A DNA stretch of 64,000 nucleotides from assembly GCA_020891255.1 (NCBI GenBank), contig BQFW01000002.1:3472001-3536000 (forward strand), in the 5' to 3' direction. Both the position numbers and the translations under genes were made by a program. Below, piece by piece: positions 3,706-25,312 of this stretch. The stretch is from Entomortierella parvispora E1425. Its lineage: Eukaryota > Fungi > Mortierellomycota. The notes under the pieces were generated by a model. The model was not told the DNA's origin, searched no databases, and saw only the letters and a list, made by a program, of their open reading frames with translations. How positions within the stretch are numbered: the first letter of the stretch is position 1; every line of letters begins with the position of its first letter.

Positions 3706-5653
3706 CCTTGACAAACAAAAGCACAAAAGACACACGTTCCGACTTTGTCATACTTTGTCGTATTCTTTTCTCCTTTTTTTTCCCTTCTTTCCCTCACCCG
3801 ATGTTGACAACACTAATCAGTAGGCGGGTTCCCTACGATTGTTCAGAATTTGTAGACACGATAATCATAATAAAAAAGGATGCCCTAAGGTTGTCCTGAA
3901 CCCCTTCACACCGCTGCCCTGCAAAAAAAAAAATCTTGTCCGCATGATCCATCGCATGACCGTAACCTCACTCCTGGTTCCAAAGTGCAGATCAGATCCC
4001 GTTCCATCCAATTGCCCCTCCGTGTCGCCACTTTTTTAAGTTGCAGGGGAGAGATCTGGAGAAGGGACAGGCTGGCCACCGTGAAAAGGTCCAAAGCTAG
4101 GCTCTAGAGTGACTTGCCTGTTGGAAAAATGTGAGGAAGGGAGAGGACACTCTAGGATCTTTTTCCGTTCCCATATGAAGCATGCGAGTCGAGTTCATTC
4201 TGTGTTGAGCGCGCCTTGGTATTATTCTTTCCTGCCAATCTCGACAAACTAGTCCGCAACATTGGCCACCCTTTCTTGTCATCTTGCCGATGCCATCAAA
4301 AGAGGTCAGAGTAACAACACCAAAAAGAAACCCGCGAAAAAAAAAGATCGTCCAAGAGAGCACAAAGAGTAAGCTCTCATGAGGGGATGAAGATAGAGAC
4401 TGTGCTGTAGCAAGAGCTCTTTTGGAGAGAAGAGGTGGGAACATTGACACGTTCATGGTTTTTTTTACCTCCCTAGCTCTTGTGTGCGACAGCCCTGTGA
4501 AAAAAAAACAACACAATAATGAACTAGAAATTGATGTGTGTCTTCTTGTACCTCACAATCTTAATCATCTCCCCATATCCACATAAAGTCATTTTCGCCT
4601 CTTGAATGCCACACAGTACCTGATCTTACGCCCTGGAAAGGAGGCAAGGGAACCGGAGGTGCAATTGCTCGCGTGCCTAAAATACTGCAGCCCTTTGGGT
4701 GGGCTGAAGGGGGAGGAGTTTGGGCGCAAGCCAAGAATTGCCATTCCGATGAGGGTTCGGCTATTGTGCTCAGGGCTCCGAAAAGCTTGACACCACACGA
4801 CCAACATTTCCCCATTTTCTATTTTGTCTCGTCAAGACACGAAAACGAGAGAGCCTATTATTATTGTGTTCTTGCCATTCGAAAGAAGAAAAAAAAAAAG
4901 GACGCTTGCCATAACCCCCTCGTCCTCCGCCAGCGAAATCGACTTCTTTTGCTTCCAAATGGATTGAAGGAGGGACGGGAAGAGGATAGGATGGACAGTG
5001 GCCACCATTTCTTCAAACCTCACAACGCTGATGTAAGGGAATTGATATTGGGAATTGGACCCATGACTTGAGAGACGCTTCCGGTTCTTCTTTGCTTCAG
5101 GCGATCTCTTCAGTGACAAACGTATGTTCTTGGACTTCTTTCAGCTTGAGGGATAACTTTGGTTTATTTCTTTGTTTGAAAGGGGGGTATGGTACAAGGA
5201 TTTAGGGTAGAATAGGGTACTAATGGTGATGCTGTTGTTGTGCTGTTGAGTTGGTCGGTCCCTGGAGGATTGAAAGAAGGGTGCGGCGTAAAAAAAAAAA
5301 CGAAGAGATGGGAACAAATTGGAGTTCCTGCCGAACATTTGAACATGACCAAAGAGGTGATTGGGCTCCCACACTGGGCCGCCTCCGCTCACTCCTTGCA
5401 CCTCTCTGTTCCCTGTAGGCGCCCAAAGCTGAGTGTACACTCATGTTGATACTGCAAATGCGCAACCGAGGGTCGTCGTCGAGATTGTCGTCAGGCTCAC
5501 TTCCATCCGAAAAAGAAAACATCCAGTCTGTCCATGGCTTTTGCATGAATTTTTCGACACTGTGCTCGTCGTCCCTTTTTTTTTTTTTTTTTTTTTTTTT
5601 TGGCTCTCCTGGTGGGGTATGTCGACCGATGGAACGCAGCAAGCAACAACTGT

Positions 5654-7877: not shown

Positions 7878-8567
7878 CTACTTGCGCGGAACCTTGACTG
7901 TAATAGTTTTGCGTTTCGCAAACGCCTCGTGTTTGTCTGGACTAGAGGTCAGGGGAAACTCGGGGATATATAGCGACCCAGGGCCATAGTTTGCGATCAA
8001 GGGCACAGGTCCAGAAATTGAGCCACCGTTGCTCCCACCTCGAATTTCAACATCGGCGCAATTCGAATACAACTCGCGGTTGCCCTGAGCATTGTTCCAG
8101 AGCCACATGAGCACTGCTTTGCCGTTGGGGGCATTCTTGGGGAGAGGTACCGAGACCGAGTAGGATTGACCAAGCTTAGTACCCTTGAGGCAATTCCGGA
8201 TCATTGTCTTCAGGACAACCCAGGTCTTGCCAGCATCGTACGAGATGGCCCATTGACAATGACCCCCGCCGTGTGAGGCACCGATGGTGTAGTCGGTTTT
8301 GATGGATTGGCCGGCTTTGAGGACGGTCCGAGTTTTGGATGGGACAGTGTTTTTGCAGAGAGGAAAGGTTTTGCCGCTGTAGGTGCCGATGGGGGCGTTG
8401 AGGTCATAGTCAATCTTTTGTCCCCCAGAGGGTTTAGGGCAACCCGCTCGGGGACTGGAGCGGGCACAGGGGTGAAGGAGTCCAACATGAGCTTCGACGA
8501 CGGCGTTGGAGCAGAGAAGTAGGGTGACCATCAGGAGAAAGAGAACGGAAAATCTTTGTAGTTGCAT
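7878..8567 (-). CDS. Secreted AA11-like lytic polysaccharide monooxygenase (putative chitin-active copper enzyme)
   Basis: The signal peptide ends ...VVEA|H, giving a mature N-terminal His. Second His in ASHGGGHCQ, and GNRELYSNCADV carrying the axial Tyr motif typical of AA11-type LPMOs. Single exon. Confidence 0.8.
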   Translation of the reverse strand: MQLQRFSVLFLLMVTLLLCSNAVVEAHVGLLHPCARSSPRAGCPKPSGGQKIDYDLNAPIGTYSGKTFPLCKNTVPSKTRTVLKAGQSIKTDYTIGASHGGGHCQWAISYDAGKTWVVLKTMIRNCLKGTKLGQSYSVSVPLPKNAPNGKAVLMWLWNNAQGNRELYSNCADVEIRGGSNGGSISGPVPLIANYGPGSLYIPEFPLTSSPDKHEAFAKRKTITVKVPRK

Positions 8568-9271: not shown

Positions 9272-9287
9272 CCCAGAGACAGAAGAC

Positions 9288-9290
<3 letters not shown>
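9272..9290. repeat. Target-site duplication, left copy (CCCAGAGACAGAAGACAGT)
   Basis: Exact 19 bp match to 19094-19112; directly abuts the poly(T) run. The final T is shared with the tail, so the TSD is 18 or 19 bp. Confidence 0.95.
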
Positions 9291-9320
<30 letters not shown>

Positions 9321-9331
9321 AACATTTTATT
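9290..9331 (-). other. LINE poly(A) tail (29 A) with upstream AATAAA
   Basis: Plus strand has T29 at 9290-9318 and TTTATT at 9326-9331, i.e. AATAAA 7 nt before the tail on the element strand. Confidence 0.9.
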
Positions 9332-9477
9332 TGCTATGTCGAGCCAAAGAAGTGAAGTGCTAGACCAAACTATCTACAACCTGAGCAAAGCCGCGTGGTC
9401 CAGACGAACAAAAGACCCCGGATCCCCGCGCAACAAATGCCACGGCTCGTCACCGTGTAATAAAGAAGAGTAAAATG

Positions 9478-12400
9478 TTACAAAAAATGGATCTTCCCCA
9501 TCTTTTCTAATGTCGATAAGTGAACCTGGCCACGCACACAAGCCAGTAAGCGCTGGTCGGCCAGCGTGGGATTGTCTTGGGCACCAGGGCAGAGGCCTTG
9601 GTGGTGGTCGGTGTTAGGCTTTCCGCATTGGCAGGTGTCTGGTGGTAAGATCGTACCAGAGGCATTGTTCCACGGTTGCCCAGTCTGGGCTTGCTTCTTC
9701 ATCTTGGGGCGGATACCTTGTGTCTTCTCCCATGCAATAGTCACTTCGCAGCGCGTCTTCCAGAGCCGAGCTAGGGCATCCCTGTCCAGACGACGAATAA
9801 ACTGATGAGCAACTGCGACCACGACAGAGCGTGGGCCTTTCATAATTGGCCTCCAGGCCTCGATCAGAGCCGAATGGAGCAGTCCTTGGTAAGCAGTGAT
9901 GACAGAACAAGCCGATGCCAACGGAGCTTTGAGCTGTCCCTGCTCAGGGGGTCGGAAGGCTGACAAGTCATGAAAAGCAGAGTAAAGTGATGCCCACAAG
10001 AGCGTGTCCGATGGTTGGTACCATTGGAGTCGTTTCGGGGCTGCAACGTTGGGTGTGCGGGCTTGTTGCTTGCGATGTCTGGTGTCAGCGTCCTCATTGG
10101 CTTTCCTGATAGCGGCCCTGCCCCACTTTGGTATGGAAGCCACCGCATCCGCCCAAATCAGTTGTTGTTGATTGTATGAGTTTGGACAAGTCCACACATG
10201 GTCGTTGTCCTCTGGGGCTGCACGACACAGGCAACAGAGTGCGTCTGCGTACATATCTGGGTGTCGCGCCTGCATGACTGTGAGTGTCGGAAGCATCCCA
10301 TGGAGTTTTTTGATGTGCTGTGTGCGTCGTGACGTGTCCCCGCGGCTGCTGAAGAAAGTATGGACTGGCCGTTTGTCGTGGATGATCGAAAGAGCAGATC
10401 GCCACTCCACGTCTGTCAAGTCACTAATAGATCGCTTGACACGTTTCTGCGCTGTCCACTGTTGATGTCGACGGATAGTAGTCTGCTGTTTAAGAAACTG
10501 CCGCAAATCTGACTCCAGTTGTTGACCGTGGCACGAGGCTGTGAAGGTAATGTCGTTTTGAGTGCTGAAGTCCGCATGCCATGGTGTCGTGTCCTGCTCG
10601 ACAGCGTTGGTAGCAATCGCGTCAGCCATATCGTTTCCCTTGTCACCACTGTGTCCTCGAACCCATTGCACCGCTGTCCGGCCCTCTCGTTCTGCCACCA
10701 CTGTCGCCAAAACTGCCCAGAGGCATGCATGTGTTGCCCGTTGTCGCTTTCGTGGAAGTGTTTTGTGCCGGTCCAGGACTAAGTCGTGATATTGAGTAAC
10801 GACACCCTCATTGTCGAGGCGGACCAAAATGTCTTGCCCTGGAGGCATGGCGACGATCGCAGCAATAAGTCCCATAAGCTCGGCTTTGCCAGAAGAGGCT
10901 TGTCCATCTGTGCGGCCAGGGATAGAGTAAGAGGTGTCCGTGGAAAAGTCAGCCACGCCAAAGGCCATAGCGCACTCTTCAGTACCTGCTCGGACCATCG
11001 AGCCGTCCGAGTATAGGACTCGCTGGTCTTGTGTGATTGGTGATTGACGAAGCTGGTGTAAGAGTTCGGCTTGGGTTCGGGGCATCCACAGCGGGCCTAC
11101 TTTGACAAGGTGGTTTTGCTGTGGGAGAGGTAAAGTAGGAGGTGAAATGTGAAGAGTATGAACAACACTTGGATCAATGGTGACCGTAAGTGGATGTTGG
11201 TGCCGTCCAATACGTTCTCTGTTGGTGATTACATCCTGGTCCCGCTCCTCCGCAGCCCAGGAGATGTACTCGGCTCTGATAAGCTGCCTTTCTTCTGCCG
11301 CCTCCAGGTGTTGTTGGTGTTTGTTGTCTGCGTAGTCGTGTGCGTCCTGGATTTTGTGAGCAAGTCTATCTGCAATGTGTCCGAGCTGGATCTGAGCACG
11401 AGCCTGCAACACTCGGAGCCCCCGCTTGGCAATACTCTCGGCCGCTTTGATGGCCTCGGCTAACCTTTGCGGGTTCTTGGCTAGTTGGCGGCGGTAACGG
11501 GCAGCATGGACCTGAAGTTCTTGACGCCTCTTATCCACTGCAGACTGCAACTCTTGGATGATCTTGGTCCGGGCAGGAATAGTGCCCACGTCGGCTGCAT
11601 TGAGCCGTGAGGTCAGCTCGTCGTCAAGCCAGCGTGATTCAGCTCGCAACAACGCGTCTGCCTCTGGTGGCAGTCGCGCCAAGTACGTCGTAGGCGGGGT
11701 GTCAACGACAAAGTTGTTGTTAGCATCTATACTAGCAGAGACTGAACGCGAGACATTGGTTAAGCCGACAGTAGTTGCGGTGTCAGGAAAGAGACGGCGG
11801 AGGGTAGGGGCTGCAACAAAGTAAGGTGAAATAGAAGAAAACTGAGAAGACAAAGATTGCGAAGATAACGGTGCTGATAAGGATGGAGAAGAAGGTGATG
11901 GTGAACAGATAGGTGACGATGGAACAATAACAGGGAGGGGTGAAGGGGGTGAAAAGGAAGGGTCGCTTACTCCCGAAGACAATGACGAAGAAGATAGAGA
12001 AGAAGAAGGTGACGATGAAGAAGGTGCAAATGAGGAAGAAGAAGAAGAAGAAGAAGAAGAAGAAGAAGAAGACAAAAAAGAAGAAGGAAGGGAGCGCGAC
12101 CTGGGCTCGTATGGTCCCTTTTTCTCTTTTGGCTCTTTTTTTGTTGTCTGGTCTTTTTGGCTGTGAGGGTGTGCAGACCGTGCAGTAGGTGGGTTGTGCC
12201 TTGCCTTTTGTCGGATGGGGTGACGTGAGCCTTTTTGTTGTTGTTTGGGTTCTTTTGCCTCTTTTTGTTGTTTCTTTTTGTCCTGCACGGTCTTGTTTGC
12301 ATCTTGTCCACACTCCCCACTCTTGTTCCGCACCACCGTTCCCACGCGCGCCTCGCTCCAGTCCTCTTCCTCTTGAACCTGCTCGCGCGCTGCCTCTTTT

Positions 12401-15400
12401 CCTTTTGGGCTCCGTGGTCCTCTTGGTATCTCATCGTCCTGCTCCTCTCCCGACGACTCTTGATCCGTGAACGCCATATCCATCTCCCAGATCACCTCTT
12501 CTACAACCTCTGCGCCGTTGCCGTCGCTGGGGCTGTGGTCCGCACTCTGTTCTAATGAATACAATTGGGTAAGTGTGTCTTTGGTTTTGTCTGGCTTTGG
12601 TCGTTGTTCTTCATCTTTCCGCTTGAACGAATGAGTCACTGCCGTAGCAGCTGTTGTAGACACTGCCTTTTGAAGTTCGTTTTTGTTTATACTCACTCGC
12701 TCAAGATCACCTGTAGTTGTTGTGGTGGCCTCCTCTGCCCGGAGCAGAGCACGACGCAGGATGCGTGGATCAATCAACGGCTCTGAATCGGTATCGGACG
12801 ACTCGTACACGCTGGATGTCGCGGACAGAGTTGTGGCGGGTGCGTTGTCCTCGTTCGTTTCGGCAGAATCAGAGTCGCTGGCATCAGGAGGTGTGCAGAG
12901 ATGGACAGTGAGAGCAGCGTACCATGCACGCATCCCGCCAGACAGGCGGTGTCGGTCCTTGAGATCGCGCCAAGATGCAAGGTGGGATCCATCCTCAGTA
13001 ACAACGTCGTGCAGGAATACAATGCCGTCGCGGAAGAGTTGTGGGCCGATTTTGAAGTATGCTTGGGCAGGGATAAGTGTCGACAGCAGTGTAGATGGCG
13101 GGTACTGCGGGAGTTGGACAGGAGCGATTGTAATGGCCCGGTCAACCAAGAGCCCACAAACCTTGGCGAGAAAATGGTGCTTCTTGACCAGACATGAGCG
13201 GTCCGGGGCTTCGAGCGGGTGTTGTACAATAGCAGCAGCAGCTTGCAGAGATGAGAAACGAGCAGCCATGACTCTGCCCACCAGACCCTTGTCTTGTATG
13301 CGAAGGAGGACTGTCGAAATTTGCTCCTCAGCCTGCACGTCACCAAAGTGGCGGAGGCCATACAATCGACGGTGGAAGAGGATACTATTGGGCGTGCCAG
13401 CCGGAAGACCCACTTTGTGCCGAATCATAGTCGTATACCGCGAAACTATCGAGGTAACTTCAGAAGGTGAGAGGATTGTGACTGAAAGACGATACAAGAT
13501 CCGTGGAATTAACACATTATTAACCAAGTAAATGGCCTGTTTGTCTGTGACAGCGCGGCGCGAGAGGACGGCACACAAGGATGAAACTTCCTCCATGACC
13601 ATTCGCTTAGTCGGCTTCGGGATCCCGTCTTCAGTGAACCACACCCCAAGGGAGCGGACGGCTGTGGTGGAGTTGTGGGCTTGTACAGTTGCGTCGCCAA
13701 TGGTGATACTGCGGTCGTCTGTGGAGGCGTTGATGACAATGAGTTCAGTCTTTTTGGGATTAATCTCGATGGCGTTCAAGGTGAAGAATTCTACCGCCAC
13801 ATCCACTGTTTGTTGCATGTTGGCCTGGGATGGGGCGTAAAAGTTGGTGTCGTCCACGAAGGCGCCTGCTGACACCTGAACTGCAGTGTCCGAGGGATCC
13901 TCCAAAAGCCTGGGAAGCCGACGCTGGTCTACCAACGAATTGTGTCGCGTTATCACATAACCGAGTCCCGCCTCCATCACTGCATCTAAAAGGACGTCGT
14001 AGCAAATAAGCCAGAGGATAGGACATTCAACACCACCCTGATCAAGGCCGCAGCGAGGGTGATATGGTGCCGTCATTCCAAAGGCCGTAATAACTTGGTT
14101 GGTTTTCTCGGTTGCAATGGTCGTGCAGAGCTGGATGAACATTGGATGGATCCGAAGACGTCTCAGGCTACGTTCAAGGGTCTGGCCCGGTCCGCAGGTT
14201 ACAGAGTCAAAACAGCGGCGGATGTCCTGGAAGAGTATCCATGCTTCCTTATTGTGCTCCCGAGCATCTTCCATCACCGCATTGAGGATGTGAATTGGAT
14301 CCTTAGTGGTAGTGCCCGGAAGCACTGAGAAATTCGCGCCACGCAGGACCCTATGTGTAGTTAGAACGACGACCATGCGGTCAACCAGAATGGAGAACAG
14401 GATTTTGCGCCCATGTTCCAGTAATGTCAAGGGACGGACGTCTGTCAAGCGACCTGTCCAGCAAGGCCCTTTGGGGATGCAGTACAGAAGGCCTTTCATC
14501 CAAGATGCCGGAAGAGAGGCTTGGGCGCAGCAAGCACGGAATATTAGGTGCAAGAGCAGACTTGCAAAAGGACCTAAATGACGGAGCAGGTCCCCGGTGA
14601 TGCCTGACAGTCCTGGCGCTCTGTTCAACGGTGCTGAAGTGACCGCAGCAGTCATCTCTTCTATTGATGGGGGGTCCATGAGGTTGGCGAACCAATGCGG
14701 ATCAATGTCGTCGCGAGGTGCATAGAAGTCGATCCACTTTCCCTCAAGGCTACCAACCATCCGCGGTGCATGCCACTCGTCACAAAAGTAGGAACGAACT
14801 GTTGCTAGTAAGGTATCAGGATCATCAATCACAGTGGCATGTCCATTCGCGTCGTTGACAATGACATGATCAAGGTGCACACGGGAGGTTTGCACTTCAA
14901 GAATGCTTCGAATGGTGGCCTTGGTGTCTGTTGCAAATCGCAGATTGCGTTGATCGATAGCCGCCTGGATGGAGGCGAAACGGTGCTGGGACACATGCAG
15001 TTGATGTTGGGCACGACTCTTGGTCCAAGCGTGTCGGGCAACGGTGGACCACTCCTGCCATTGAGCTGTCTCTGCATCTAGGGGGGGAAGAGGAGGTAAA
15101 TCAAGGTCCGCCTTGTTTTTGGATGTCCACTGCCCTAGCGTGGCGTGGATATTCGCAATTGCACTTGCTGAAGGGGGGGCTGCCGACAAGAAACCCTTCT
15201 TAACGAGATTAATCGCCCTGCCAATGTCTGCTGTGCGGGCACGGAGTCGTGCGGCGCCACGGGGTGGTAGTGGTCCTCCACCGACTCGCTTGCAGGGGAG
15301 GGTGTGTCTGGCCACAGAGAGAATGTTGGTTTCGAGTATCGAGCACAGGGCCGTGAGCTGAACTGTTGTAAGATCCAGAGCATTGATGGCCGCGATGTCC

Positions 15401-16449
15401 GGTCCGTTCGGAAGCATGGGAATGCCGATTTCTTGGAGGTTGCCATACTCGCAGAGGATGTAGTCAAGGCGCGTGGTGAAAGCTTCAAGTTGTTCACCCG
15501 TGGCGTCAGCTACAATGGCCTTCTTACCACGAGAGGGGCGTTTGCAAGTGCCCGTATCTGCCGACGGCGCTATTAGTGATTGGATAGCAAAGGTGGTGGT
15601 GACGAAGGAATGATCGGAGGAGATGGGGTGTTCAAGAGTGAAGGATGATGCGGTAAGTGTATAGGAAGCAAGTGTGGGGGAGGACCATATCATGTCAATA
15701 CGGCTCTGGTTGTTCCATGTAAATTGTGGGTTGCTTGGGTGTAACAAACGGTATGTGTCCATGAAGGAGTTGTTATCGAGCCATGAGAAGAATGGCAACT
15801 CTGGTAGCGTGGATGTGTGCTGGTCCGCTGCGCGGTCAATGGAGGGGTTGACGACTCCGTTGAAATCCCCCAAGAGGATGACATGGCACCCTGCCATAGT
15901 GAAGTTGTCGATTTGCGTTTGGAGCCAATCGACCGTGGGGGCATATGTGTCGTAATGGGCGCTGCCAGTGCCAGGAAGGTAGCAATTGATAATAGCAAAA
16001 TGTGCTGCTGACTTGAAGCCAAAACGAGCCGCAATTGCGCGGCCGTGTTCGTCAGTAACAGTGTCTAACAGGTATGTGTACCAATGGTCGTGAATGAAAA
16101 GGCCTACCCCACTGCCTCTCGGTTTTGTGGGCGAACAGCTCCACAGAGCACGAAATGGTAGTGAGTAGGTGTCGCGAAAAAATAAAGAGTTGGTTCTGTT
16201 CGAAGGGGCGTTTGTCTCCTGGACGCCAAAAATACCAATGTCATGAAGAGCAGCCAGCTCACACAGCGAATTAAAAAAACCTGAGGATAGACCGCCTTGG
16301 ACATTGATGGAGCCGAGGGTAAGAGTGTTGCGTGGGAGTAAAAGGGTAGGTGGGTTGAGAATATCAGTGGTGTAGTGTGGCAATGGGGAAGGTGCAGTAG
16401 AGGGTGAGGCCGAGGGTGAGGCCGAGGGTGATGTGGGTGCGCTAGACAT
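9478..16449 (-). CDS. LINE ORF2: AP endonuclease, reverse transcriptase, long insertion, RNase H, C-terminal Cys/His motifs (2323 aa)
   Basis: APE motifs GSINVQG, GVQET, LLGDFN, SRIDMI, SDH. RT motifs RAPG, RPLTLL, QDIRRCFDSV, GLDQG, AFVDD (13849-13860). RNase H motifs YSDGS, KAEL, RLDN, WVRGHSG, NDMAD. Zinc-finger-like CCLCRAAPEDNDHVWTC. No stops or frameshifts. Confidence 0.96.
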   Translation of the reverse strand: MSSAPTSPSASPSASPSTAPSPLPHYTTDILNPPTLLLPRNTLTLGSINVQGGLSSGFFNSLCELAALHDIGIFGVQETNAPSNRTNSLFFRDTYSLPFRALWSCSPTKPRGSGVGLFIHDHWYTYLLDTVTDEHGRAIAARFGFKSAAHFAIINCYLPGTGSAHYDTYAPTVDWLQTQIDNFTMAGCHVILLGDFNGVVNPSIDRAADQHTSTLPELPFFSWLDNNSFMDTYRLLHPSNPQFTWNNQSRIDMIWSSPTLASYTLTASSFTLEHPISSDHSFVTTTFAIQSLIAPSADTGTCKRPSRGKKAIVADATGEQLEAFTTRLDYILCEYGNLQEIGIPMLPNGPDIAAINALDLTTVQLTALCSILETNILSVARHTLPCKRVGGGPLPPRGAARLRARTADIGRAINLVKKGFLSAAPPSASAIANIHATLGQWTSKNKADLDLPPLPPLDAETAQWQEWSTVARHAWTKSRAQHQLHVSQHRFASIQAAIDQRNLRFATDTKATIRSILEVQTSRVHLDHVIVNDANGHATVIDDPDTLLATVRSYFCDEWHAPRMVGSLEGKWIDFYAPRDDIDPHWFANLMDPPSIEEMTAAVTSAPLNRAPGLSGITGDLLRHLGPFASLLLHLIFRACCAQASLPASWMKGLLYCIPKGPCWTGRLTDVRPLTLLEHGRKILFSILVDRMVVVLTTHRVLRGANFSVLPGTTTKDPIHILNAVMEDAREHNKEAWILFQDIRRCFDSVTCGPGQTLERSLRRLRIHPMFIQLCTTIATEKTNQVITAFGMTAPYHPRCGLDQGGVECPILWLICYDVLLDAVMEAGLGYVITRHNSLVDQRRLPRLLEDPSDTAVQVSAGAFVDDTNFYAPSQANMQQTVDVAVEFFTLNAIEINPKKTELIVINASTDDRSITIGDATVQAHNSTTAVRSLGVWFTEDGIPKPTKRMVMEEVSSLCAVLSRRAVTDKQAIYLVNNVLIPRILYRLSVTILSPSEVTSIVSRYTTMIRHKVGLPAGTPNSILFHRRLYGLRHFGDVQAEEQISTVLLRIQDKGLVGRVMAARFSSLQAAAAIVQHPLEAPDRSCLVKKHHFLAKVCGLLVDRAITIAPVQLPQYPPSTLLSTLIPAQAYFKIGPQLFRDGIVFLHDVVTEDGSHLASWRDLKDRHRLSGGMRAWYAALTVHLCTPPDASDSDSAETNEDNAPATTLSATSSVYESSDTDSEPLIDPRILRRALLRAEEATTTTTGDLERVSINKNELQKAVSTTAATAVTHSFKRKDEEQRPKPDKTKDTLTQLYSLEQSADHSPSDGNGAEVVEEVIWEMDMAFTDQESSGEEQDDEIPRGPRSPKGKEAAREQVQEEEDWSEARVGTVVRNKSGECGQDANKTVQDKKKQQKEAKEPKQQQKGSRHPIRQKARHNPPTARSAHPHSQKDQTTKKEPKEKKGPYEPRSRSLPSSFLSSSSSSSSSSSSSSFAPSSSSPSSSLSSSSLSSGVSDPSFSPPSPLPVIVPSSPICSPSPSSPSLSAPLSSQSLSSQFSSISPYFVAAPTLRRLFPDTATTVGLTNVSRSVSASIDANNNFVVDTPPTTYLARLPPEADALLRAESRWLDDELTSRLNAADVGTIPARTKIIQELQSAVDKRRQELQVHAARYRRQLAKNPQRLAEAIKAAESIAKRGLRVLQARAQIQLGHIADRLAHKIQDAHDYADNKHQQHLEAAEERQLIRAEYISWAAEERDQDVITNRERIGRHQHPLTVTIDPSVVHTLHISPPTLPLPQQNHLVKVGPLWMPRTQAELLHQLRQSPITQDQRVLYSDGSMVRAGTEECAMAFGVADFSTDTSYSIPGRTDGQASSGKAELMGLIAAIVAMPPGQDILVRLDNEGVVTQYHDLVLDRHKTLPRKRQRATHACLWAVLATVVAEREGRTAVQWVRGHSGDKGNDMADAIATNAVEQDTTPWHADFSTQNDITFTASCHGQQLESDLRQFLKQQTTIRRHQQWTAQKRVKRSISDLTDVEWRSALSIIHDKRPVHTFFSSRGDTSRRTQHIKKLHGMLPTLTVMQARHPDMYADALCCLCRAAPEDNDHVWTCPNSYNQQQLIWADAVASIPKWGRAAIRKANEDADTRHRKQQARTPNVAAPKRLQWYQPSDTLLWASLYSAFHDLSAFRPPEQGQLKAPLASACSVITAYQGLLHSALIEAWRPIMKGPRSVVVAVAHQFIRRLDRDALARLWKTRCEVTIAWEKTQGIRPKMKKQAQTGQPWNNASGTILPPDTCQCGKPNTDHHQGLCPGAQDNPTLADQRLLACVRGQVHLSTLEKMGKIHFL

Positions 16450-18688
16450 TGGAGGAAGCAGGAGGGGTGCTGTCTGGGTAACCAGATGGGTTGCTGTCGG
16501 GCCAAGGGGTGGGGGTGCCTTCTGGATAGTTAGATGGGTTGCTGTTAGGCCATTCTGGGGTGGTTAAGAAGCCAGATGACTGTGAGGTCGACGTGTGCGT
16601 GATAACAGATGGGAAAACAAAGGATGGCGGGATGGCTGTCAGTGGGGAACCGAGATCCACACTGTCCTGTGAGGGGCGGGGAAGCTGGGTGCTCGGAACG
16701 AGGACCTGGCCTTGTCCTTGAGGTGGTGTAGATGAGTGAGTGGCAACGAAATGTGCGAGCTGTGCTCTGAGTGCCCGGCTCTCTGCTGTGACGGCCTCCA
16801 GTGCAGCAGCGTGGAGCTGTGCCTGTCGTTGGAAAGCAGTCTCCATTTCTGCCTTCGCCTGTTGCAGATCCTTTGCCGCCTGACGCTTGAAAGCACGCAA
16901 GTCGTTGAGTTCTTGTTGGGCTATGGCGCTGAGTTGTCTCTGAGTGTCCAGCTTGCCCGCCTGCTGTGATGCGGCGCCTAGCCTAAATTGCTGTGCTGTC
17001 ATGATTTGTTGGCGTTCTTCAGCGAGGGTGCGGTGGTTGGGAGCTTTGACAGCAACGCGTTTGCCATTGCGGTTACGAACTAGGGGGGTGTCAGTGTCTT
17101 CTACTTCCTCCTCAGCGGTGTTGGTGCCGTCCTCTTCAGCAAGAGACTCTTCCGTGTACCCTTCGGTGTCTCCCATGGCAATGTCCTCTTCAGCGGTGAC
17201 GCCCTGGGGAGTAGATGGGGCGACAGAAGTGGACGGGGCGTGGATGGGTTGTGCGATATCGGGGACAAGTGTGCTAATCAGTGCCACCAGGTTGGAGAGT
17301 TGATGTTCCAGGTTTTGGAAGTGGTGGGTAGTTGTAGCCTGTGCCGCCTGGAAACGTTCATTGACACTGTGGCTCATTGCATCCAGTGCCGTCTTCCAGG
17401 CAGGCACCTTCGCGTTTGTGGCGGACGATTGAGGGTTAGGTGCAGCGACACCGGAGGCAGCACGTGCTGTTGTTGGTTGTTGATGTGGGAGAGTGCCAGA
17501 TGCCCACACATTTCCCGCTGCAGTGGGTCTACGTGGGGTAGGGGCAGGAGTGGTAGCAGGGGAGGGGACTTTGGTGACAGGAGTGGGGGGCTTCCTTTTG
17601 TCTTGGAAGATACGTTGGTTGTTCAGCTTACGAGTTTCAGCCTTGGCTGCGAGGAGTTGTCGCTGGGGGCATCCATCTGCACGACGGTGCTCATGAGAGC
17701 CGCACTGAAAGCATGTTGCGGTGTCTGTCGAGACCCAGACAGTTACCTTTGGTTGTCCCGAGATGTCCTGTAAGACAAACTTTTGGTTGCAAAGCGATGA
17801 CTGTTGCTCACTGTCAGCAAAGAAAACATACGCCTCCTGAAGGCGACGGCCAAGACGGGGTTGAAAGGGCATAGTGATGCCATGGAAGTGACCATGGTCG
17901 TGGAGAAGGAGAGCAACATCATATGGTGTGTAGTGACGAGGGAGGTTGGCGAGTTTCATAGTGAGGTCTGGGTTAAATGGGACGTTTTGGGTACCAAGGC
18001 GGCGGACAATACCAGAGTCACTGCCGATGAGGACATATGACAGCTGCTCACGCTGCATGGCCTCGACCGACGCCTCCGACTCAAACAAAATAGTTGCCTT
18101 TCGCATGGTGTGTTTGCCATTGAGGTTGGAGGAGACTCGTTCAACCACTCCATAGCGAGTAAGGGCAGCAGCGATGTCATCGTGTTTAGTATCATATTTC
18201 AACGACCATACGTCAATTGATCGTTTCTCTTCAGCAACATGAAGAGCAGTGGTGAAGGGGCGGAAAGGAACAGGTTTGCCCTCTTCATCAGTGGTACCTG
18301 CCGCGTACAGTGCTTGACGTTGGGATTCCTCTCCCACCTCAAACACGAAAAATGGTTTGGTGGCCTCGCCCTCAATAGGGCGAACGTGTTGAATTGTAGG
18401 AATGCTGACTGGGACGGCCAGGCCTTTCATGCAGACGTAGAGAGACGCGAGACGGGATTTCATGTTTGGGCCTACAAACGCAGAAGCCTCAATCATAACG
18501 TTGGCTCGATGGCGACGAGGTTGAACAGTCACAAAATCCGCTTCAGGGCGAGCAGGCTCCTCGTTGCTGACTGTTTGTGTCTGGGGTGGAGTTGGAGTGG
18601 CGGGGATGTCGGCCGTGGTGTCCATAGCCGTATCCTGGGTGGCACGCCAATGGGTGCCAGGGGCGCGAGGGGTGGTAGTGGCTGACAT
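16442..18688 (-). CDS. LINE ORF1 (gag-like nucleic acid-binding protein, 748 aa)
   Basis: Two RRM-like segments (RSIDVWSLKYDTKHDDIAAALTRYGVV; MKLANLPRHYTP...EAYVFF), zinc knuckle CFQCGSHEHRRADGC (17669-17713) and a coiled coil. Directly upstream of ORF2 and overlapping it by 8 nt. Confidence 0.92.
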   Translation of the reverse strand: MSATTTPRAPGTHWRATQDTAMDTTADIPATPTPPQTQTVSNEEPARPEADFVTVQPRRHRANVMIEASAFVGPNMKSRLASLYVCMKGLAVPVSIPTIQHVRPIEGEATKPFFVFEVGEESQRQALYAAGTTDEEGKPVPFRPFTTALHVAEEKRSIDVWSLKYDTKHDDIAAALTRYGVVERVSSNLNGKHTMRKATILFESEASVEAMQREQLSYVLIGSDSGIVRRLGTQNVPFNPDLTMKLANLPRHYTPYDVALLLHDHGHFHGITMPFQPRLGRRLQEAYVFFADSEQQSSLCNQKFVLQDISGQPKVTVWVSTDTATCFQCGSHEHRRADGCPQRQLLAAKAETRKLNNQRIFQDKRKPPTPVTKVPSPATTPAPTPRRPTAAGNVWASGTLPHQQPTTARAASGVAAPNPQSSATNAKVPAWKTALDAMSHSVNERFQAAQATTTHHFQNLEHQLSNLVALISTLVPDIAQPIHAPSTSVAPSTPQGVTAEEDIAMGDTEGYTEESLAEEDGTNTAEEEVEDTDTPLVRNRNGKRVAVKAPNHRTLAEERQQIMTAQQFRLGAASQQAGKLDTQRQLSAIAQQELNDLRAFKRQAAKDLQQAKAEMETAFQRQAQLHAAALEAVTAESRALRAQLAHFVATHSSTPPQGQGQVLVPSTQLPRPSQDSVDLGSPLTAIPPSFVFPSVITHTSTSQSSGFLTTPEWPNSNPSNYPEGTPTPWPDSNPSGYPDSTPPASSNV

Positions 18689-19093
18689 ACTTGAGTATTG
18701 AATTGGGTTTTTTTTTTTTTTTTTTTGGTTTTCTGGGATATTTGGGGAATTTCAAGGTGTTACAAATATAAAAAGGGTAGTGGGCACAGAGAGGGAAGGA
18801 ACGAGGTAGGGGCACTAAAACGGAGGAGGGGGGAAGGGGAAGGCGAAAAGAAGAGGGGGATAGGGGCACGGCCCTCGCTCACTGGGAACCAGGAACCAGG
18901 AACGGGCTGGGTTCGAATGTGCGCTGCGAATTAACTTTCAAATGGCCGCGAAATGGCCAAGATGAGGCGAATGGCAGAGAAAAAAAGATTGAAATGAACG
19001 TGGACACTAGGGGAATCCGGCTAGCTAGGGCGACCAGTATGGCGACCCTCGTGCGTACCGTAAAACGTGTTTTTTTGTTTTTGTGCAAGCGCT

Positions 19094-19112
19094 CCCAGAG
19101 ACAGAAGACAGT
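19094..19112. repeat. Target-site duplication, right copy
   Basis: CCCAGAGACAGAAGACAGT, identical to 9272-9290. Flanks diverge immediately (A vs T on the left; T vs G on the right). Confidence 0.95.
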
Positions 19113-19199
19113 GACTCTACAGGGCCCAGTGCAGAAAGAGCGAGAAAATCTGGGACCTAGTCCACAAGTTGCCCCTTTTTTTGGGCGTGCTTCGTGAAG

Positions 19200-19273
19200 G
19201 ACTGTGTGTAGTGTAGTGGGAATTCAACCGCCTGTGAAGCTGCATGCCTGGGTTCGAATCCGGGCTCGGGTCT
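19200..19273 (+). pseudogene. tRNA-like element / degenerate tRNA (His-GTG-like loop) with intact Pol III A and B boxes
   Basis: A box TAGTGTAGTGG (19209-19219), perfect B box GGTTCGAATCC (19251-19261) at tRNA-like spacing, and a 7 nt loop CT-GTG-AA. The acceptor, D and anticodon stems contain several mismatches, and there is no T4+ terminator directly downstream. Confidence 0.6.
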
Positions 19274-19348
19274 AGACTTTACTCACCATTTGCTATATAC
19301 ATACGTCTCTCCCTGGTATATAGGATGGCCTCTCGGGAGAGCTGTGAA

Positions 19349-19391
19349 GTTGGTACACATGCCCGTTGGTACGTGATACCCGTTGGTACGT
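19349..19391. promoter_or_regulatory. Triple GTTGGTAC motif upstream of TFC4
   Basis: GTTGGTAC at 19349, 19365 and 19382; the last two lie within an exact 13 bp direct repeat CCCGTTGGTACGT. Function is inferred only from position. Confidence 0.35.
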
Positions 19392-19828
19392 CATAACTGC
19401 GAAAAGCGGCGGCGTAGCATGCTCATGAAGGGGGAGTCTAGTCACCTGGAAAGGGTGGCTAGATTTCTTGCTCCAGGATACAGCTTTCTTTTTCCTTTGC
19501 TTCTTGACAAAAAGAAAAAAGAGAAAGCCTCGATTGAAGATCTTCAAGGTGTGATCCAAATGTTTGGTGGCGTTTTTTTCTTTCTCTGTCTGGGCTCAAC
19601 TCTGCGCATTGTGTGCAAAAAGCTGCAGGTGCATGCAATGTTGAATGCTGTCAGGAATGAATAAAACGGCAGTATCCTTCGTCGCAAGTGGGATCATGAA
19701 AATTGAGCACGTGACCAACTTTTTTTTTTTCGCCCAACCTCGTCGTCGCGTGGATCCCTTTGCATGATTTCCTTCCATTTCTCCAGCCTCAAGCACTTCA
19801 TTCTTCAATTGACACACCCCACGCTCGC

Positions 19829-22800
19829 ATGGAGACCAACGCTGGCAGCAGCAGCACAGGAAATCAGCCGCCTGGGAATGGAAAGGCACATCCTCAGCCC
19901 TCGATCCCAGGACATGCTGGTGGAAGCACTTCGCAGAACCCGCTCATGACGCGTGTGAATCAGAGCTCGGGCGACCTGGCGCAGTTCGCCACCGTAGGAA
20001 CACAACAGGCACCGCCCTCGGTAATAGGCGACTTTGTAGGATTATCTAGTGGACAGCGACCTCCACACCACCGGCCACATGGCGGGGCACAAGATATTGG
20101 CGATACCTTGCGAAATATCCAACTCGGAGGTCTGGATGACGAGACGAATGAACTGGATGAAGATATGGAGGAAGACGACATTACATTAGATTACAGTCAA
20201 CTGCAACGACAAGAGCAACTGGGGAATGAAGAGGCATCTGGCTCCTCGACTACAGGAGTCCCCATTTCTGTGGACATGATGGCTGTCGCATCTGCAGTTG
20301 ACCCGAAGGGACTTATGGCCATATCTGGACAAGAGTAAGAGCGGATGAAATGTTTTGTATGCACACACCCTTTGTATTCTATTGAAAATGGCACTGATAT
20401 TGTCCTCGTTCCTGTCTACTTTACTTTTGATAGTTCATGGGACCCAACAGAGGGGTTTGATGAAGGACTGGATGAGGATGAACTGGACATGGATGACCCT
20501 GCGATGGAGGAGCTGGGATTTGCTCTTCAGCCAAAAACAAAAAGAGCCAAAAGAAAAGAGAGAAAGGTATGGTGACAATAGCGTTGATGCTTGTTTTATT
20601 ATAATTCTCTCATAGTTAACCCTGTCAATTATTCTTGTTGACATAGACTCAGAGGAAAGGAGGCAACGCCAATATTGTATATAGTCCAGAAGTACAGAAG
20701 CTGCTAGGAATGGCCAACAACGCTTACGTCAGGAAGGAATTTAACGAAGCTGTGGAACTCTTTCAACAAGTCATCGTCAAAGATCACCGAGTCTTTCAGG
20801 CCTGGAACATCATGGGAGTCATCCAGGAAGAGCTGGGCAACACGGAAAAGGCCTTGCAGCTCTATCTTGTAGGAGCTCATTTAACGCCGAAAGATGGTGC
20901 ACTCTGGAAAAAGCTCGCAAAGATTTCAAAGTATGGCACAGCACCAGGCATTATGGCATTTGTTTTATAGGAAAAAGGATCCTGACATCTAATTTTCATG
21001 TCAACACAGGGATTGTGGATATAACCAGCAAGCACTATACTGTTTTTCCAAAGCTTACTCGGCCGACAAAACGGACTTGGATGCTCTTTGGGATCGGTCT
21101 GTAATGCAATCGATAATGGACCAACCGGAAAAGGCCATTAGGGGATTCACGACTCTATTGGCCTCTCGTCCACACTATATGCCAGCCCTGGAGGAAATCG
21201 TCAGTTTATACAGTACACAAAGTCAGGACAACAAAAAATACCAGGAAAATATGCACCGAGCATTGGAACTGTATGAGGCTGCTTATCTGCACTACTCCTC
21301 CATGCCGGACCGGTTTGCCACTGCGAGCGACGATCCTTTTGATGTTCATGTGGAGAATCAAGAGGAAGGCGAACCTTTCGGGTACTCTGCATTGAACATG
21401 CTGAGTGATCTCTATATCATGTTTGAAGAGTACGAAAAACCACTTCAGATCATCAAGACTTGGTCAAGACGACTTCAGAAGAGAGCTCATCAGACTTGGT
21501 GGGATGATTACAAGGATGATCGGGAGTTTGACACGGACGCCTATGACGAGGAGTTACAGGCATCCTTGGGCGAGAATCGAACGCGAGGACTGCCAATCGA
21601 TTTGCGTATCAAAATCGGAACCTGTCGACTCATGTTAGAAGAGGTCAAAGAGGCAAAGGTGAGTCTTGCAAAGTTTAAGAACCGAGCAGGCAAACTTCCT
21701 GTCAGGACCATGAATGAAACTGACCTATCTTGATGATCTATTCTCTAGGCCCAATTCAAATATCTTTGGAAATGCTCCGTCGAGGATTTTCCAGATCTGT
21801 ATGAGGGAATTGCTGAGCTCTATGTTTCAAAGATGATGTGGAAGGACGGTTATAATGTCATTAGAGCCATGCTCCAGTTTGATGAGCTGGATATTCCCAA
21901 GGTTTGGATCATGGCAGGAGAGTGTCTTCGAAACATGCATCGCACTAAGGAGGCCCGTGATTTCCTTGAGCAAGGTTGGTGTTGTATATGAGCAAACGAT
22001 TCGCAGGACTTTTGTTAGCGATCAACAAACTGATTTTTTTTTTCCGTTTTGAAAACTAGCCCATCGCGCGGATCCAACAAACCTGAACGTGAATCTTTTG
22101 CTGGCTGAGGTTTATGAAGAACTGGGAAGTCTTCCTCAAGCGCTGACGCTCGTAAATTATGGTAATGATTGCATTGTGAATCGCCAGCTGGATATATCGG
22201 CCCAATGTCGTATTAATTACGGCCCAACGACTCCTATTGTTTTTCACCATTGTTATAGTTCGTCAGGTCAATGCTGAAAAGCAAGCAGAGGTCGAAAGGA
22301 AACGCAGGGAAAACAAATTGGCCAGGGATGCTAAACTTGGCAAGGACACTTCCGAGCTTGATGACCGTGTTCCTCAGGCCTATCTTCTCGACCCCAACTA
22401 TGCCAATCTGGGCTACCGACAAATTGCTCCAAGGGTGGAATCGTCAACTCAAAAGGATATTACCCAGAGTGCGGCAGTGGAAGCCATGGAGCGAATCCGA
22501 AGAGCTGGACAAGATCCAGCATTGGCTGCCGAGTATGCCAGCGAAGACCGAGATCGCGATATTCAACTCTTAAGGTCGCTACGAGAGCAGGAGCGAGCAG
22601 AGAGGGCACGTAAGGCTCAGCAGCCGAATGCCCAGGATGACCAAGAGGTAGCTGACAAATTCAATCGATTGGAGGCTATTTTCCTGAGGATCAACCAGAC
22701 GGAGAAATCGAGAGTATGGGAGAGCATGAGGGAAGCCGTCGCAGTGACGCGACAGGATCGGACACAATTTATCCATGCCGCGCGCGAACTCATTGATATC

Positions 22801-25312
22801 TTCAGGAACAACAAGGCGTTCTTCAAGGGCAGGACCCAACCCTACTTGGGAGGAGAAGCTAGAGCCTGGAAGTATCGCCGAGACCCGTCTAATGCAGATG
22901 GACTTTCTGAACACGTCAAGGATATGTCTGAACGTCTCGGAAGAGCCATGGGTGTGCAGGATGCAGCTCTACCGACAACCAGAGAATTAATCGATAGCCA
23001 CCTGCCGAAACCTGAGCCACCAACCAGTTACCGTGGTATCCCATTTGATGTTTGGTATCTCGTGGTGATCCGCCAAGCTGTCTATTTGACGTACGAGGAT
23101 CGTTATTCAGAAGCAGCAGAGCTATTGATGAAGATGTACAACGCCAACGTGTTTTACGCCGTTCCACGCCGAAGATCGGGAATCTTTTTGGTCTTGCTCG
23201 CCTGCGCGCTCTGGTCTGGTGACTATGGAGGAACCATCACTGCGGGTCGCTGGATCGCCCAATTCGGAGGGTTCCGACCTTTGCCGAACAAAATCTTTCA
23301 GAGTATCTTTACGTTTGGATTTAGAGGTGACCAGAAGTTCCTTGCATGGTCACAATCAACAACAAGTAAGGTCCTGAAGCGCCAAATGGAGGTCATGCGA
23401 GAAGTCCAGGGAAAGCGCGTGGCATTAACGGCTAGAAGGAGGCCATTGAGAGTCAACAAGAAGAAGATTCTAAAGCGAGGGCCAAAAAAGGTTTTCCATA
23501 TGATGGCGCCCACTTTAGAAGCTTCGGTCAAACGATTCAAGCAGGATGTCAGCGTTGATTTGAAAACGAGCGCTGAGTACCGAATGGTCCTCGAACGATT
23601 CCGGGACGGAGATGGTGCAAGCTCTAAAGCCCCTCCAGAGAAAAGGGCATACAAGAAGAAAGCAGCAGCCGAGGATCCATCGCTTTCTCATGAGGCGTCC
23701 CATGATGTTGCAGAGAACTCGGAGCAGGAGGTCGAAATTGCGGCCGAGTTAGCCAGTGGACCTTCTTCTGCTTTGGAAAATACGCCTCAAGATGGTGCAA
23801 CAGTCAGGAAGCGGAGGTTTATTGACGAGTCTGTAGATGAACCTCAAGAAGTAGAATATCAGTCTGGAGAGGAGGTAGTAGAGGAAGTTGAGAGTAGTGG
23901 TGACGATGCTTTTGACGACGACGACTATGAGGACGAGGAGCGGTACAAGACTGATTATGAGCGAGACAGAGGCGCAACAAACATTGATGACGATGATGAG
24001 AATGACACGGACTGGGAAGATGTAGAAAGCTTTCCTGGACAGAGATCAGGAGTGTTTGGAGTGAGACGGCCAGGCCCTAGAACTGCATCAGCGGAAGATG
24101 AACAAGATGATAGGCCTTCACCGGCAGCTGCAAGTCAGGCCAGGCATGGGTCAACCCATGTCAACGCTAATGATGTTCCAGGAGAACAGGAAGCGGAAAA
24201 GAATAGGACAGTGAGGGGCAGCAGGCCTTTCACGGAGCCGATGTATCCAAAGTTTCCAATCACTTTGGCCATTTTCTACGCCCATGTCTTTGCCATGACT
24301 CGGTCGCATGCCTCTGCTGCTGGTGAGGACAAAGAGACAATGCTTTTTTTTATTTTTTTATTATGGTTAAAACGAGGTTGTTGTGGACTTGGTTTCTGAC
24401 ACCCCCATCCTTCTTTTCTTAGAGCTTTACCTGGAGTGTCTGGAACATGCACCCACTCAACCTATTATCCACCTATTCGCCTCTCTACAGTACATCAACA
24501 CAGCTATGCAACGGTCCACACCTAATCGACAGCTCCTCATCGTTCGTGGACTCACGCTTCTGCAAATGTATTATCACCTCCGACGAGCGGGACATGGTAC
24601 TATTGCCTATGCACAACTCGAGAGCGAGAACAAGGCTAAAGGCAAGGCTCCAGCCCCACTTCCTACTATCCCGCCCGTTTCTAAAAAGAACAGCTGGATG
24701 GAGCAAGCCAACCAAGCGTCGGAAGAAGCGTTCAAGGCTGCCACGGCTCCAGATCCCTCTCCAGAGCAACAGTCAAAGGTATTGCCGCTCTGTCAACAAG
24801 AGGCAGAGTACAATTTTGCGAGGGCTTTTCATCAGATGGGGCAGAACAATCTGGCCCTGATGCACTACCGACGTGTTTTGGAATTGCCATCTTGGCGACA
24901 GGTGGAGCGTAACCGCAAGGAAGCCGAGAAGGCGCAGTTGCGGGAGGCTAGAGACATCAGACGGGCGGAAAGGGCGGAAAGGCGAACTCTGGCGATGGAG
25001 AGAAGGATGCATCTGACAAGTGAACGACGCCAGGCTGAAGCTGAACAAACCAACGGAAAGGGAAACAAAGAAGACGACGAGGATGAAGAAGATGATGATG
25101 AAGAGGAGGAAGAAGAGGAGGATACTGATTCCGAGGACGATGAAGATGGTGAAGGAAGCTCAGAAAAGAGACGGATCCGACTGGAGGGGGCACTGGATGA
25201 TGACCCCACGGATCTAAAGAGGGAGGCCGCTTTCAACATGGCCAAGATCTTTATGATGAGCGGTGCGTCTGCGCAAGCCAACATGGTGATGCGGAAGTAC
25301 TGCACGTTCTGA
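19829..25312 (+). CDS. TFC4: RNA polymerase III transcription factor TFIIIC TPR subunit (Tfc4 / tau131 / GTF3C3)
   Basis: Phase-consistent exons: 19829-20334, 20434-20566, 20647-20930, 21010-21658, 21749-21974, 22060-22161, 22259-24322, 24423-25312. Acidic N-terminus, then TPRs (GMANNAY...AWNIMGVIQEELGNTEKALQLYLVGAHLTPKD). C-terminal EAEYNFARAFHQMG and DLKREAAFNMAKIF...KYCTF match the Tfc4/GTF3C3 pattern. Confidence 0.9.

Follow-up and report, generated by a model that had tools for sequence, protein, structure and literature searches.

A LINE family lying head-to-head upstream of RNA polymerase III genes in the fungus Entomortierella parvispora: probable tethered integration at Pol III promoters

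The window analysed here is a stretch of 64,000 nucleotides (nt) from contig BQFW01000002.1 of Entomortierella parvispora E1425, a fungus of the Mortierellomycota. It contains, at 9290-19093 on the minus strand, a 9.8 kb retrotransposon without long terminal repeats (LTRs), i.e. a long interspersed nuclear element (LINE). Copies of this LINE family recur in the genome at a short and narrowly defined distance upstream of genes that RNA polymerase III (Pol III) transcribes, in head-to-head orientation. We consider it probable that the arrangement originates from tethered, orientation-specific integration at Pol III promoter complexes, resembling that of the TRE5 elements of Dictyostelium but with a longer reach. 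A preliminary description of the window had proposed such tethering from this one locus. Its arguments from position, orientation and a nick that is not T-rich are borne out by the genome-wide census, whereas the identity of the tether partner, TFIIIB or TFIIIC, is conjectural.

Results

Census of LINE copies in the genome

The genome of E. parvispora E1425 comprises 38.66 Mb in 19 nuclear contigs plus the mitochondrial genome, and carries 192 nuclear tRNA genes (PMC8759367). Within the 20 contigs of the assembly, at least 40 matches to the 3' end of the element were scored and their flanks were mapped by BLAST against the window copy; tRNA genes were located with ARAGORN, introns included, and other RNA genes with Rfam. 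Approximately 29 distinct insertion loci were resolved in this way. The 77 % matches of the L027-L031 type (about 12 identical matches of 653 bp) had been taken up as a possible young subfamily or short interspersed element; they represent an old LINE fragment within a repeat of more than 2.3 kb and, being non-independent insertions, were left out of the locus count.

At 13 of the approximately 29 loci, a bona fide tRNA gene is present on the opposite strand, with the LINE 5' end 104-152 bp upstream of it. The targeted genes represent eight isoacceptor types, and the distances include 113 bp for tRNA-Gly, 107 bp for tRNA-Lys, 109 bp for tRNA-Val, 113 bp for tRNA-Ala, 109 and 135 bp for two tRNA-Arg loci, 123 and 143 bp for two tRNA-Asn loci, and 104, 109, 129 and 152 bp for four tRNA-Leu loci. 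The 143- and 152-bp intervals each contain an additional insertion that consists of an A tail only, and otherwise the range is 104-135 bp. A 5S rRNA gene (Rfam 64.8 bits) is the neighbour at one further locus, where an old copy with 78 % identity stops 92 bp upstream of the gene, likewise head-to-head with it.

The orientation is the same for all 14 copies relative to their Pol III genes, which has a chance of 6e-5 from orientation alone. In an analytic null model with 192 tRNA genes in 38.7 Mb, a random insertion falls within the target interval in the observed orientation with a chance of 1.7e-4, and the binomial chance of at least 13 tRNA matches in 29 loci is 5e-42; a conservative version with 1193 tRNA-like targets and 62 loci gives 4e-27. 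The insertion events are independent, as their flanks, tRNA types and target-site duplications (TSDs) all differ. The survey of the flanks of all copies that the preliminary description had called for thus returned the predicted position and orientation at 14 of the approximately 29 loci, and removes its concern that a single locus might reflect chance. Neither random placement nor a sequence-specific target, the two contrary outcomes named there, is compatible with the census and the unshared nick sequences described below.

Geometry of integration

In target-primed reverse transcription (TPRT), the strand that meets the tail with its 3' end serves as the primer. TSDs of 11-19 bp, bearing no relation to one another, are readable for at least 17 copies; in every case the primer strand is the one with the tRNA sense sequence, and nicking took place at the TSD edge nearer to the tRNA. 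Across the ten loci for which a TSD and a target are both available (nine tRNA genes and the tRNA-like relic of the window), the first nick falls 86-117 bp upstream of +1, with a mean of 97 and a standard deviation of 10 bp, and the second nick 11-19 bp further upstream. The primer 3' ends (GG, AA, CA, TA, CG, CC, GC and similar) follow no consensus. G/C or A predominate in the last two bases of the primer at 14 nick sites, none of which has a T run, so that the absence of a T-rich target, first remarked at the window, holds across the family. The LINE is also distinct from the elements with sequence-specific targets (R1, R2, Tx1-type and Utopia), since its TSDs and flanks are unrelated between loci and it inserts outside the RNA genes, not within them.

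At L007, L024, L030 and C15, a single tRNA gene has two or three copies stacked head-to-tail upstream of it, each copy having its own TSD at the same or an adjacent nick site. The youngest copy is the one next to the tRNA gene in three of these four stacks (98.6/96.6/86.4 %, 99.4/88.8 % and 98.5/94.3 % identity), as expected from repeated insertion at a fixed distance from the gene.

A nick interval only 30 bp wide (-86 to -117), the 14/14 orientation and the reuse of nick sites in stacks are features that selection cannot yield from essentially random integration, in which the survivors would merely be those copies that fell into harmless regions upstream of tRNA genes in a gene-dense genome. 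The pattern is, moreover, already present in very young copies (98-100 % identical). We therefore regard survival after random integration as very improbable, even though the genome is compact (11,641 coding sequences in 38.7 Mb; PMC8759367), all copies but one are dead, truncated fragments open to filtering by selection, and some copies lie elsewhere, in other transposons and at contig ends.

The 5S rRNA locus bears on which part of the Pol III complex is recognized. tRNA genes have type 2 promoters and 5S genes type 1 promoters; the internal promoters differ, and the upstream TFIIIB is common to both. Both kinds of gene are targeted at about equal distance from their starts, and this speaks for the upstream part of the Pol III complex, not the internal boxes, as the reference. 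A corresponding argument from tRNA and 5S targeting has been made for TRE5-A (PMC5391098, PMC5911963).

Upstream motifs of tRNA genes

The upstream regions of 11 tRNA genes (L076-L086) and the flanks of most LINE-occupied tRNA genes were also surveyed for motifs. One to three copies of (T)CACGTG(A) are present at -56 to -114 in seven of ten randomly chosen tRNA genes, against about 0.03 expected per sequence, and GCGCCACCAAA is a second recurrent motif, located at about -60 to -125. Both look like conserved upstream elements of E. parvispora tRNA genes.

An alternative is that targeted integration is guided by local chromatin or by an upstream factor other than TFIIIB/TFIIIC, for example by the edge of the -1 nucleosome, as for Ty1, or by a protein that binds CACGTG or GCGCCACCAAA. 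The nick lies about 40-50 bp beyond the TFIIIB position in the yeast footprint, roughly where the -1 nucleosome edge would fall. CACGTG is found at most occupied loci as well as in seven of the ten randomly chosen regions, and GCGCCACCAAA overlaps some of the TSDs (L013, L023 and L026). However, the distance from nick to CACGTG varies between 2 and 39 bp, whereas that to the tRNA +1 is tight (standard deviation 10 bp), and the motif is absent at the window, the two 5S loci, C9a, L003 and L023; CACGTG was rejected as an integration guide on these grounds. In addition, a symmetric nucleosome or a palindromic motif alone leaves the strict orientation unexplained. Guidance by chromatin or by such a factor is, in our judgement, unlikely.

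The window copy and its tRNA-like neighbour

The window copy is the sole full-length copy of the family in the genome, because the 5' untranslated region (UTR) and the full-length open reading frame (ORF) 1 each occur only once. It had been described from the letters alone as a complete element with a TSD, an A29 tail and two open ORFs, and every one of these features is present within 1 bp (Table 1). The TSD, cccagagacagaagacag, is 18 bp long (9272-9289 and 19094-19111), or 19 bp with the following t. The first-strand nick in the pre-insertion site corresponds to the edge 19111/19112, about 90 bp upstream of the start of the tRNA-like element. An independent short-read contig (public run, probably from the same sample) spans the 5' junction without differences. 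We count the existence of LINE copies that are 97-100 % identical, together with the intact state of both ORFs in the window copy, as signs of recent activity.

The interval of 97 bp from the TSD end to the A box (19209) that had been reported for the window is reproduced. As to the tRNA-like neighbour itself, the A box and the B box are indeed present, but the element is not a tRNA gene: ARAGORN calls none at this position, the Rfam tRNA score of 16.4 bits compares with a gathering score of 29, and the sequence has no cloverleaf fold. It belongs to a relic family of seven copies with 82-96 % identity. The nearest paralogue, L092 (G000:C2:3468650-3469110), is situated 22 kb upstream, and approximately 115 bp of upstream sequence has been duplicated with it. 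Compared with 19094-19300 of the window, this paralogue is 94-96 % identical, with one 75-bp indel and no LINE; the similarity begins at the TSD and runs rightwards only, with the left flank unmatched in this empty-site comparison.

The window copy lies head-to-head with the relic, its 5' end 109 bp from the relic start and the B box at the expected offset of 158. One might suppose that the family does target Pol III genes and that this particular copy came to lie beside a dead relic by chance or through a past duplication, as the relic reaches only 16.4 bits without a cloverleaf, and forms a duplicated unit with its upstream ~115 bp, and as the six paralogues of the relic are all missing from the listed positions of LINE 3' ends. 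We hold this to be extremely improbable. The family geometry is exact, including a nick at about -90; the per-locus chance of a match to GGTTCRANNC in the expected 40-bp interval is about 3e-4; and the arrangement recurs at three other relic loci. Since the window copy landed beside good A and B boxes, its position suggests that the relic may still be bound by Pol III factors.

At three or four loci without a callable tRNA, the window included, a B-box match is found where the distance from the LINE 5' end would predict it. The offset is 158 for the window copy, 176 for L014 and 153 for L026, compared with 160-191 for real tRNA genes. At L014 the B box is followed by a terminator-like T run, and at L012 the arrangement is less clean. 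That relics retaining a B box are targeted would be indirect evidence for a dependence on the B box and TFIIIC.

In the region to the right of the relic, no TPR/TFC4 signal was detected in the large ORFs scanned at 21077-25312 (a scan that did not take in 19300-21000). Adjacent ORFs, located at 24383-25312 on the plus strand and 7878-8567 on the minus strand, match Virilizer N-terminal (PF15912) and LPMO_10 (PF03067).

Interrupted loci and co-resident retroelements

An LTR retrotransposon begins 86 bp beyond the LINE 5' end at L022 and 98 bp beyond it at L030. The end of an LTR of this type at C1:2851238 is located 20 bp upstream of a tRNA gene; because the LTR end adjoins the tRNA at 20 bp and the LINE is 86 bp from the LTR start, the distance at L022 before LTR insertion would be about 101-106 bp. 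The common flank of L022 and L030 was also considered as an unknown Pol III gene and rejected, since the two loci share more than 1.1 kb at 99 % identity and this sequence consists of the LTR and interior of the LTR retrotransposon; an Rfam search of these flanks gave no match. At L016, another poly(A) retroelement, oriented as the LINE, is inserted between the LINE and a tRNA-Thr gene.

The LTR retrotransposon has an LTR of about 605 bp, starting with TGTCGTGAC and ending with CACGACA. Its LTR ends 20-22 bp upstream of the tRNA +1 at two unrelated tRNA genes, L081 (G000:C8:1243371-1243610) and L087 (G000:C1:2851239-2851390), and it also parts the two LINE copies above from their presumed tRNA (L022 locus 1-1415, L030 locus 1-1119). 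From these positions, we read it as a Ty3-like element of the E. parvispora genome that targets the start site.

The second poly(A) retroelement is about 315 bp long (L016 1186-1500; also L019, L020, L003, L013, L051 (C15b) and L052 (C14a)). It occurs in the stacks upstream of tRNA genes in the orientation of the LINE, and at C14a it has itself received a LINE insertion, flanked by an 18-bp TSD. The retroelement is probably a further family that shares the targeting, possibly a non-autonomous one. Insertions that consist only of an A tail (17-29 A, with short duplications of their own) occupy the canonical site upstream of tRNA-Leu and tRNA-Asn at the loci L003 (~1227-1271) and L058 (C9b; ~4293-4344). 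They appear as if TPRT had been aborted straight after priming.

At L019 2401-2474, about 320 bp from the LINE 5' end, a sequence resembling a C/D-box snoRNA matches snR79 below threshold (40 bits, E 0.002). It is preceded by a CACGTG motif and a possible short gene that bears an A box and a T run. The unit may be a Pol III-driven tRNA-like/snoRNA unit.

Structure of the element and its proteins

The features of the element and its target are collected in Table 1. ORF2 begins at an ATG of its own, which overlaps the ORF1 stop. Among solved structures, where LINEs are represented by L1 and R2 only, the best match of ORF2 is human L1 ORF2p (E 4e-20). A metagenome relative, P0001 (2101 aa, 56 % identical to ORF2), has the same architecture, and alignment with it traces the unusual length of ORF2 to the linker, the helical segment and the C-terminal domain after RNase H. 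The nearest protein clusters of ORF1 are RRM/CCHC proteins of Mucoromycota. The domain order APE endonuclease, reverse transcriptase (RT) and RNase H, together with an RNA-binding ORF1, fits the RNase H-bearing APE LINEs (Tad1/I-like or L1-with-RNase H groups). The APE endonuclease, RT, A tail, TSDs and 5'-truncated copies expected of a non-LTR element of the TRE5-like, Pol III gene-targeting class are all present.

Within the 5' UTR, antisense to the LINE (plus strand, 18907-18918), there is also a 12-nt B-box-like sequence with the B-box core, CTGGGTTCGAAT. It matches 19248-19259 of the target exactly and lies about 175 nt from the element 5' end; the post-hoc chance of such a match is about 0.003.

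Table 1. Features of the LINE and of its tRNA-like target in the window
Feature	Position	Strand	Remarks
Left (3'-side) TSD copy, cccagagacagaagacag(t)	9272..9290	.	3' end of the plus strand primed first-strand cDNA
A29 tail (T29 on the plus strand)	9290..9318	-	first T may belong to the TSD
3' UTR	9319..9477	-	portion common to all 5'-truncated genome copies
ORF2, 2323 aa, without interruption	9478..16449	-	
APE-type endonuclease, ORF2 aa 47-280	15610..16311	-	Exo_endo_phos PF03372 E 2.7e-9; L1 endonuclease structures
Reverse transcriptase, ORF2 aa 658-936	13642..14478	-	RVT_1 PF00078 E 1.1e-14; human L1 ORF2p E 4e-20
Low-complexity acidic/basic/Ser-rich linker, ORF2 aa ~1185-1590	11680..12897	-	poorly conserved; mostly gaps in the P0001 alignment
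Helical segment, probably coiled coil, ORF2 aa ~1591-1760	11170..11679	-	weak Apolipoprotein-type match; conserved in P0001
RNase H, ORF2 aa 1809-1950	10600..11025	-	RNase_H PF00075 E 5e-12
Clade-specific C-terminal domain, ORF2 aa 1951-2323	9481..10599	-	invariant C/H columns; weak zf-RVT match
Cys/His knuckle of the C-terminal domain, ORF2 aa 2072-2088	10186..10236	-	
Cys/His knuckle of the C-terminal domain, ORF2 aa 2273-2287	9589..9633	-	
ORF1, 748 aa, open	16442..18688	-	8 nt overlap with the ORF2 start
RRM (RRM_1, Pfam), ORF1 aa 162-211	18056..18205	-	
5' UTR and element 5' end	18689..19093	-	single copy in the genome
Right (5'-side) TSD copy	19094..19112	.	
Decayed tRNA-like element	19206..19267	+	presumed Pol III factor-binding site; Rfam tRNA 16.4 bits
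A box	19209..19219	+	good
B box, GGTTCGAATCC	19251..19261	+	perfect

Relatives in this and other genomes

A search with the ORF2 C-terminal domain returned 348 representative protein clusters at E<=1e-3, and full-length relatives are present in Rhizophagus irregularis. Most of the metagenome and Logan contigs (L064-L072, L094 and L096-L098) end inside the element; five loci from other organisms are informative for position. In the metagenome locus L073 (37 % protein identity), the element lies about 117 bp from a tRNA gene that is cut by the contig end (Rfam 25.3 bits for the truncated match). In the metagenome locus L101 (54-71 % protein identity), it lies about 99 bp upstream of a 5S gene (101 bits). 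The E. parvispora genome also contains a second LINE family, family D, with 50 % RT identity and intact ORFs, in which a tRNA-Gly gene stands head-to-head at most 260 bp upstream of ORF1; this distance is an upper bound only, as a TSD was looked for at the locus and none was found.

Discussion

Proposed mechanism

The copies themselves show the course of the integration reaction. About 86-117 bp upstream of +1, the endonuclease nicks the strand on which the tRNA reads in sense, and cDNA synthesis proceeds towards the tRNA gene. A second nick, 11-19 bp upstream of the first, leaves the 5' end of the new copy facing the 5' end of the Pol III gene. To account for this geometry, we propose that the ribonucleoprotein particle of the element is tethered to the Pol III pre-initiation complex in its upstream part, with either ORF1p or ORF2p, which is unusually large, making the contact. 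The likeliest partner would be TFIIIB, brought in by TFIIIC, as for Dictyostelium TRE5-A.

Several observations weigh against this interpretation. About 8-10 of the approximately 29 loci have no recognisable Pol III gene, their flanks consisting of other transposons, subtelomeric duplicates or duplicated contig ends, and unassigned sequence. No Pol III gene is nearby at L095, L099 and L100, i.e. at three of the five informative copies from other organisms, and the two copies of a related family in the same genome (45 % RT identity) do not adjoin tRNA genes. The target in the window itself falls well short of tRNA thresholds, and Pol III factors are only presumed to occupy it. With respect to the data, the census scored 40 of 62 candidate matches, the LINE 5' ends are BLAST boundaries with an accuracy of a few bp, and the additional sequence data consist of DNA contigs, probably from the source sample. 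Taking these points together with the census, we still regard tethered, TRE5-like integration as probable.

Comparison with known systems

The closest parallel is TRE5-A (and TRE5-B/C) of Dictyostelium discoideum, which is likewise an APE-type LINE with two ORFs and an A tail, inserted upstream of tRNA genes at a short, constant distance, transcribed in the opposite direction and with its 5' end facing the gene. TRE5 also targets 5S rRNA genes, nicks without sequence specificity, and forms stacks at one tRNA gene (PMC5911963, PMC5391098). In behaviour, the two systems agree wherever they could be compared, except in reach: TRE5 inserts 40-54 bp upstream, whereas in the E. parvispora LINE the 5' junction is found at 104-135 bp and the nick at 86-117 bp. 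They also differ in architecture: the TRE5 ORF2 is composed of APE, RT and a zinc finger, lacks RNase H and is reached by a -1 frameshift (PMC5911963), whereas that of the E. parvispora LINE consists of APE, RT, linker/coiled coil, RNase H and a Cys/His domain, spans 2323 aa and starts at an overlapping ATG. In having RNase H and an ORF2 with its own ATG, the element departs from the ORF2 plan of the TRE lineage, which lacks RNase H and depends on the -1 frameshift. The host is a mucoromycotan fungus rather than an amoebozoan, and a contact between ORF1p and TFIIIB has been shown for TRE5-A, while for the E. parvispora LINE we infer it only.

NLTR-B of Polysphondylium pallidum and NLTR-A of Dictyostelium purpureum resemble the present element in having APE, RT and RNase H and in lying upstream of tRNA genes; they are unrelated to the TREs, and their tRNA habit has been taken as convergent evolution (PMC5006619). 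Compared by description only, NLTR-B differs in its distance of 39-64 bp and in distributing APE, RT and RNase H over three ORFs, and NLTR-A in its distance of 2-6 bp.

Among fungal retroelements, Ty3 (via TFIIIB) and Ty1 (via AC40) of Saccharomyces cerevisiae similarly find safe sites upstream of tRNA genes through the Pol III machinery (PMC5911963, PMC7459421). Both are LTR elements that use an integrase and not TPRT, and they insert in either orientation. Insertion is at the transcription start for Ty3 and periodic across about 1 kb for Ty1, in contrast to the distance of about 100 bp observed here. With ordinary APE-type LINEs, such as mammalian L1 and the fungal Tad1-like elements, the E. 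parvispora LINE shares 5' truncation, an A tail, TSDs of 11-19 bp and an RRM in ORF1. L1, however, nicks dispersed T-rich TTTT/AA sites, whereas here the position is set by the neighbouring Pol III gene.

Implications

The non-LTR entries in a 2018 review of Pol III-directed retrotransposons are exclusively dictyostelid (PMC5911963). The preliminary description knew of no fungal non-LTR element with this habit, and the full-text literature to 2026 likewise yielded none that targets Pol III genes (subscription-only papers and Repbase reports being outside the scope of this search). LINE targeting upstream of Pol III genes in a fungus would therefore add a new host kingdom to a habit described in social amoebae (TRE5, TRE3 and NLTR-A/B). 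A second, unrelated host kingdom, with another architecture and another reach (~100 vs ~50 bp), would show that this habit has evolved repeatedly among LINEs in compact genomes, and would permit a comparison of how TPRT machines are tethered to TFIIIB/TFIIIC.

A more far-reaching view, which we put forward tentatively and regard as somewhat less than an even prospect, is that the family represents an independently evolved fungal LINE lineage that is widespread among Mucoromycota and recognizes the Pol III pre-initiation complex by a new tether. Either ORF1p, or the coiled coil of ORF2p together with its Cys/His C-terminal modules, might then act as a ruler of about 100 bp, and the insertions would mark cryptic sites bound by TFIIIC/TFIIIB, the decayed element of the window among them.

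De novo integration assays look feasible, given that one copy is intact, that identities of copies reach 100 %, and that the host can be cultured and has a finished genome. If the proposed targeting is true, the intact copy in a culturable fungus would provide a tractable system for position-specific LINE integration, and the tethering of a LINE to harmless sites would be of practical interest for targeted gene insertion. The insertions may further serve as natural footprints of Pol III factor occupancy in E. parvispora, flagging tRNA-like relics, that of the window included, as candidate extra-TFIIIC-like sites.

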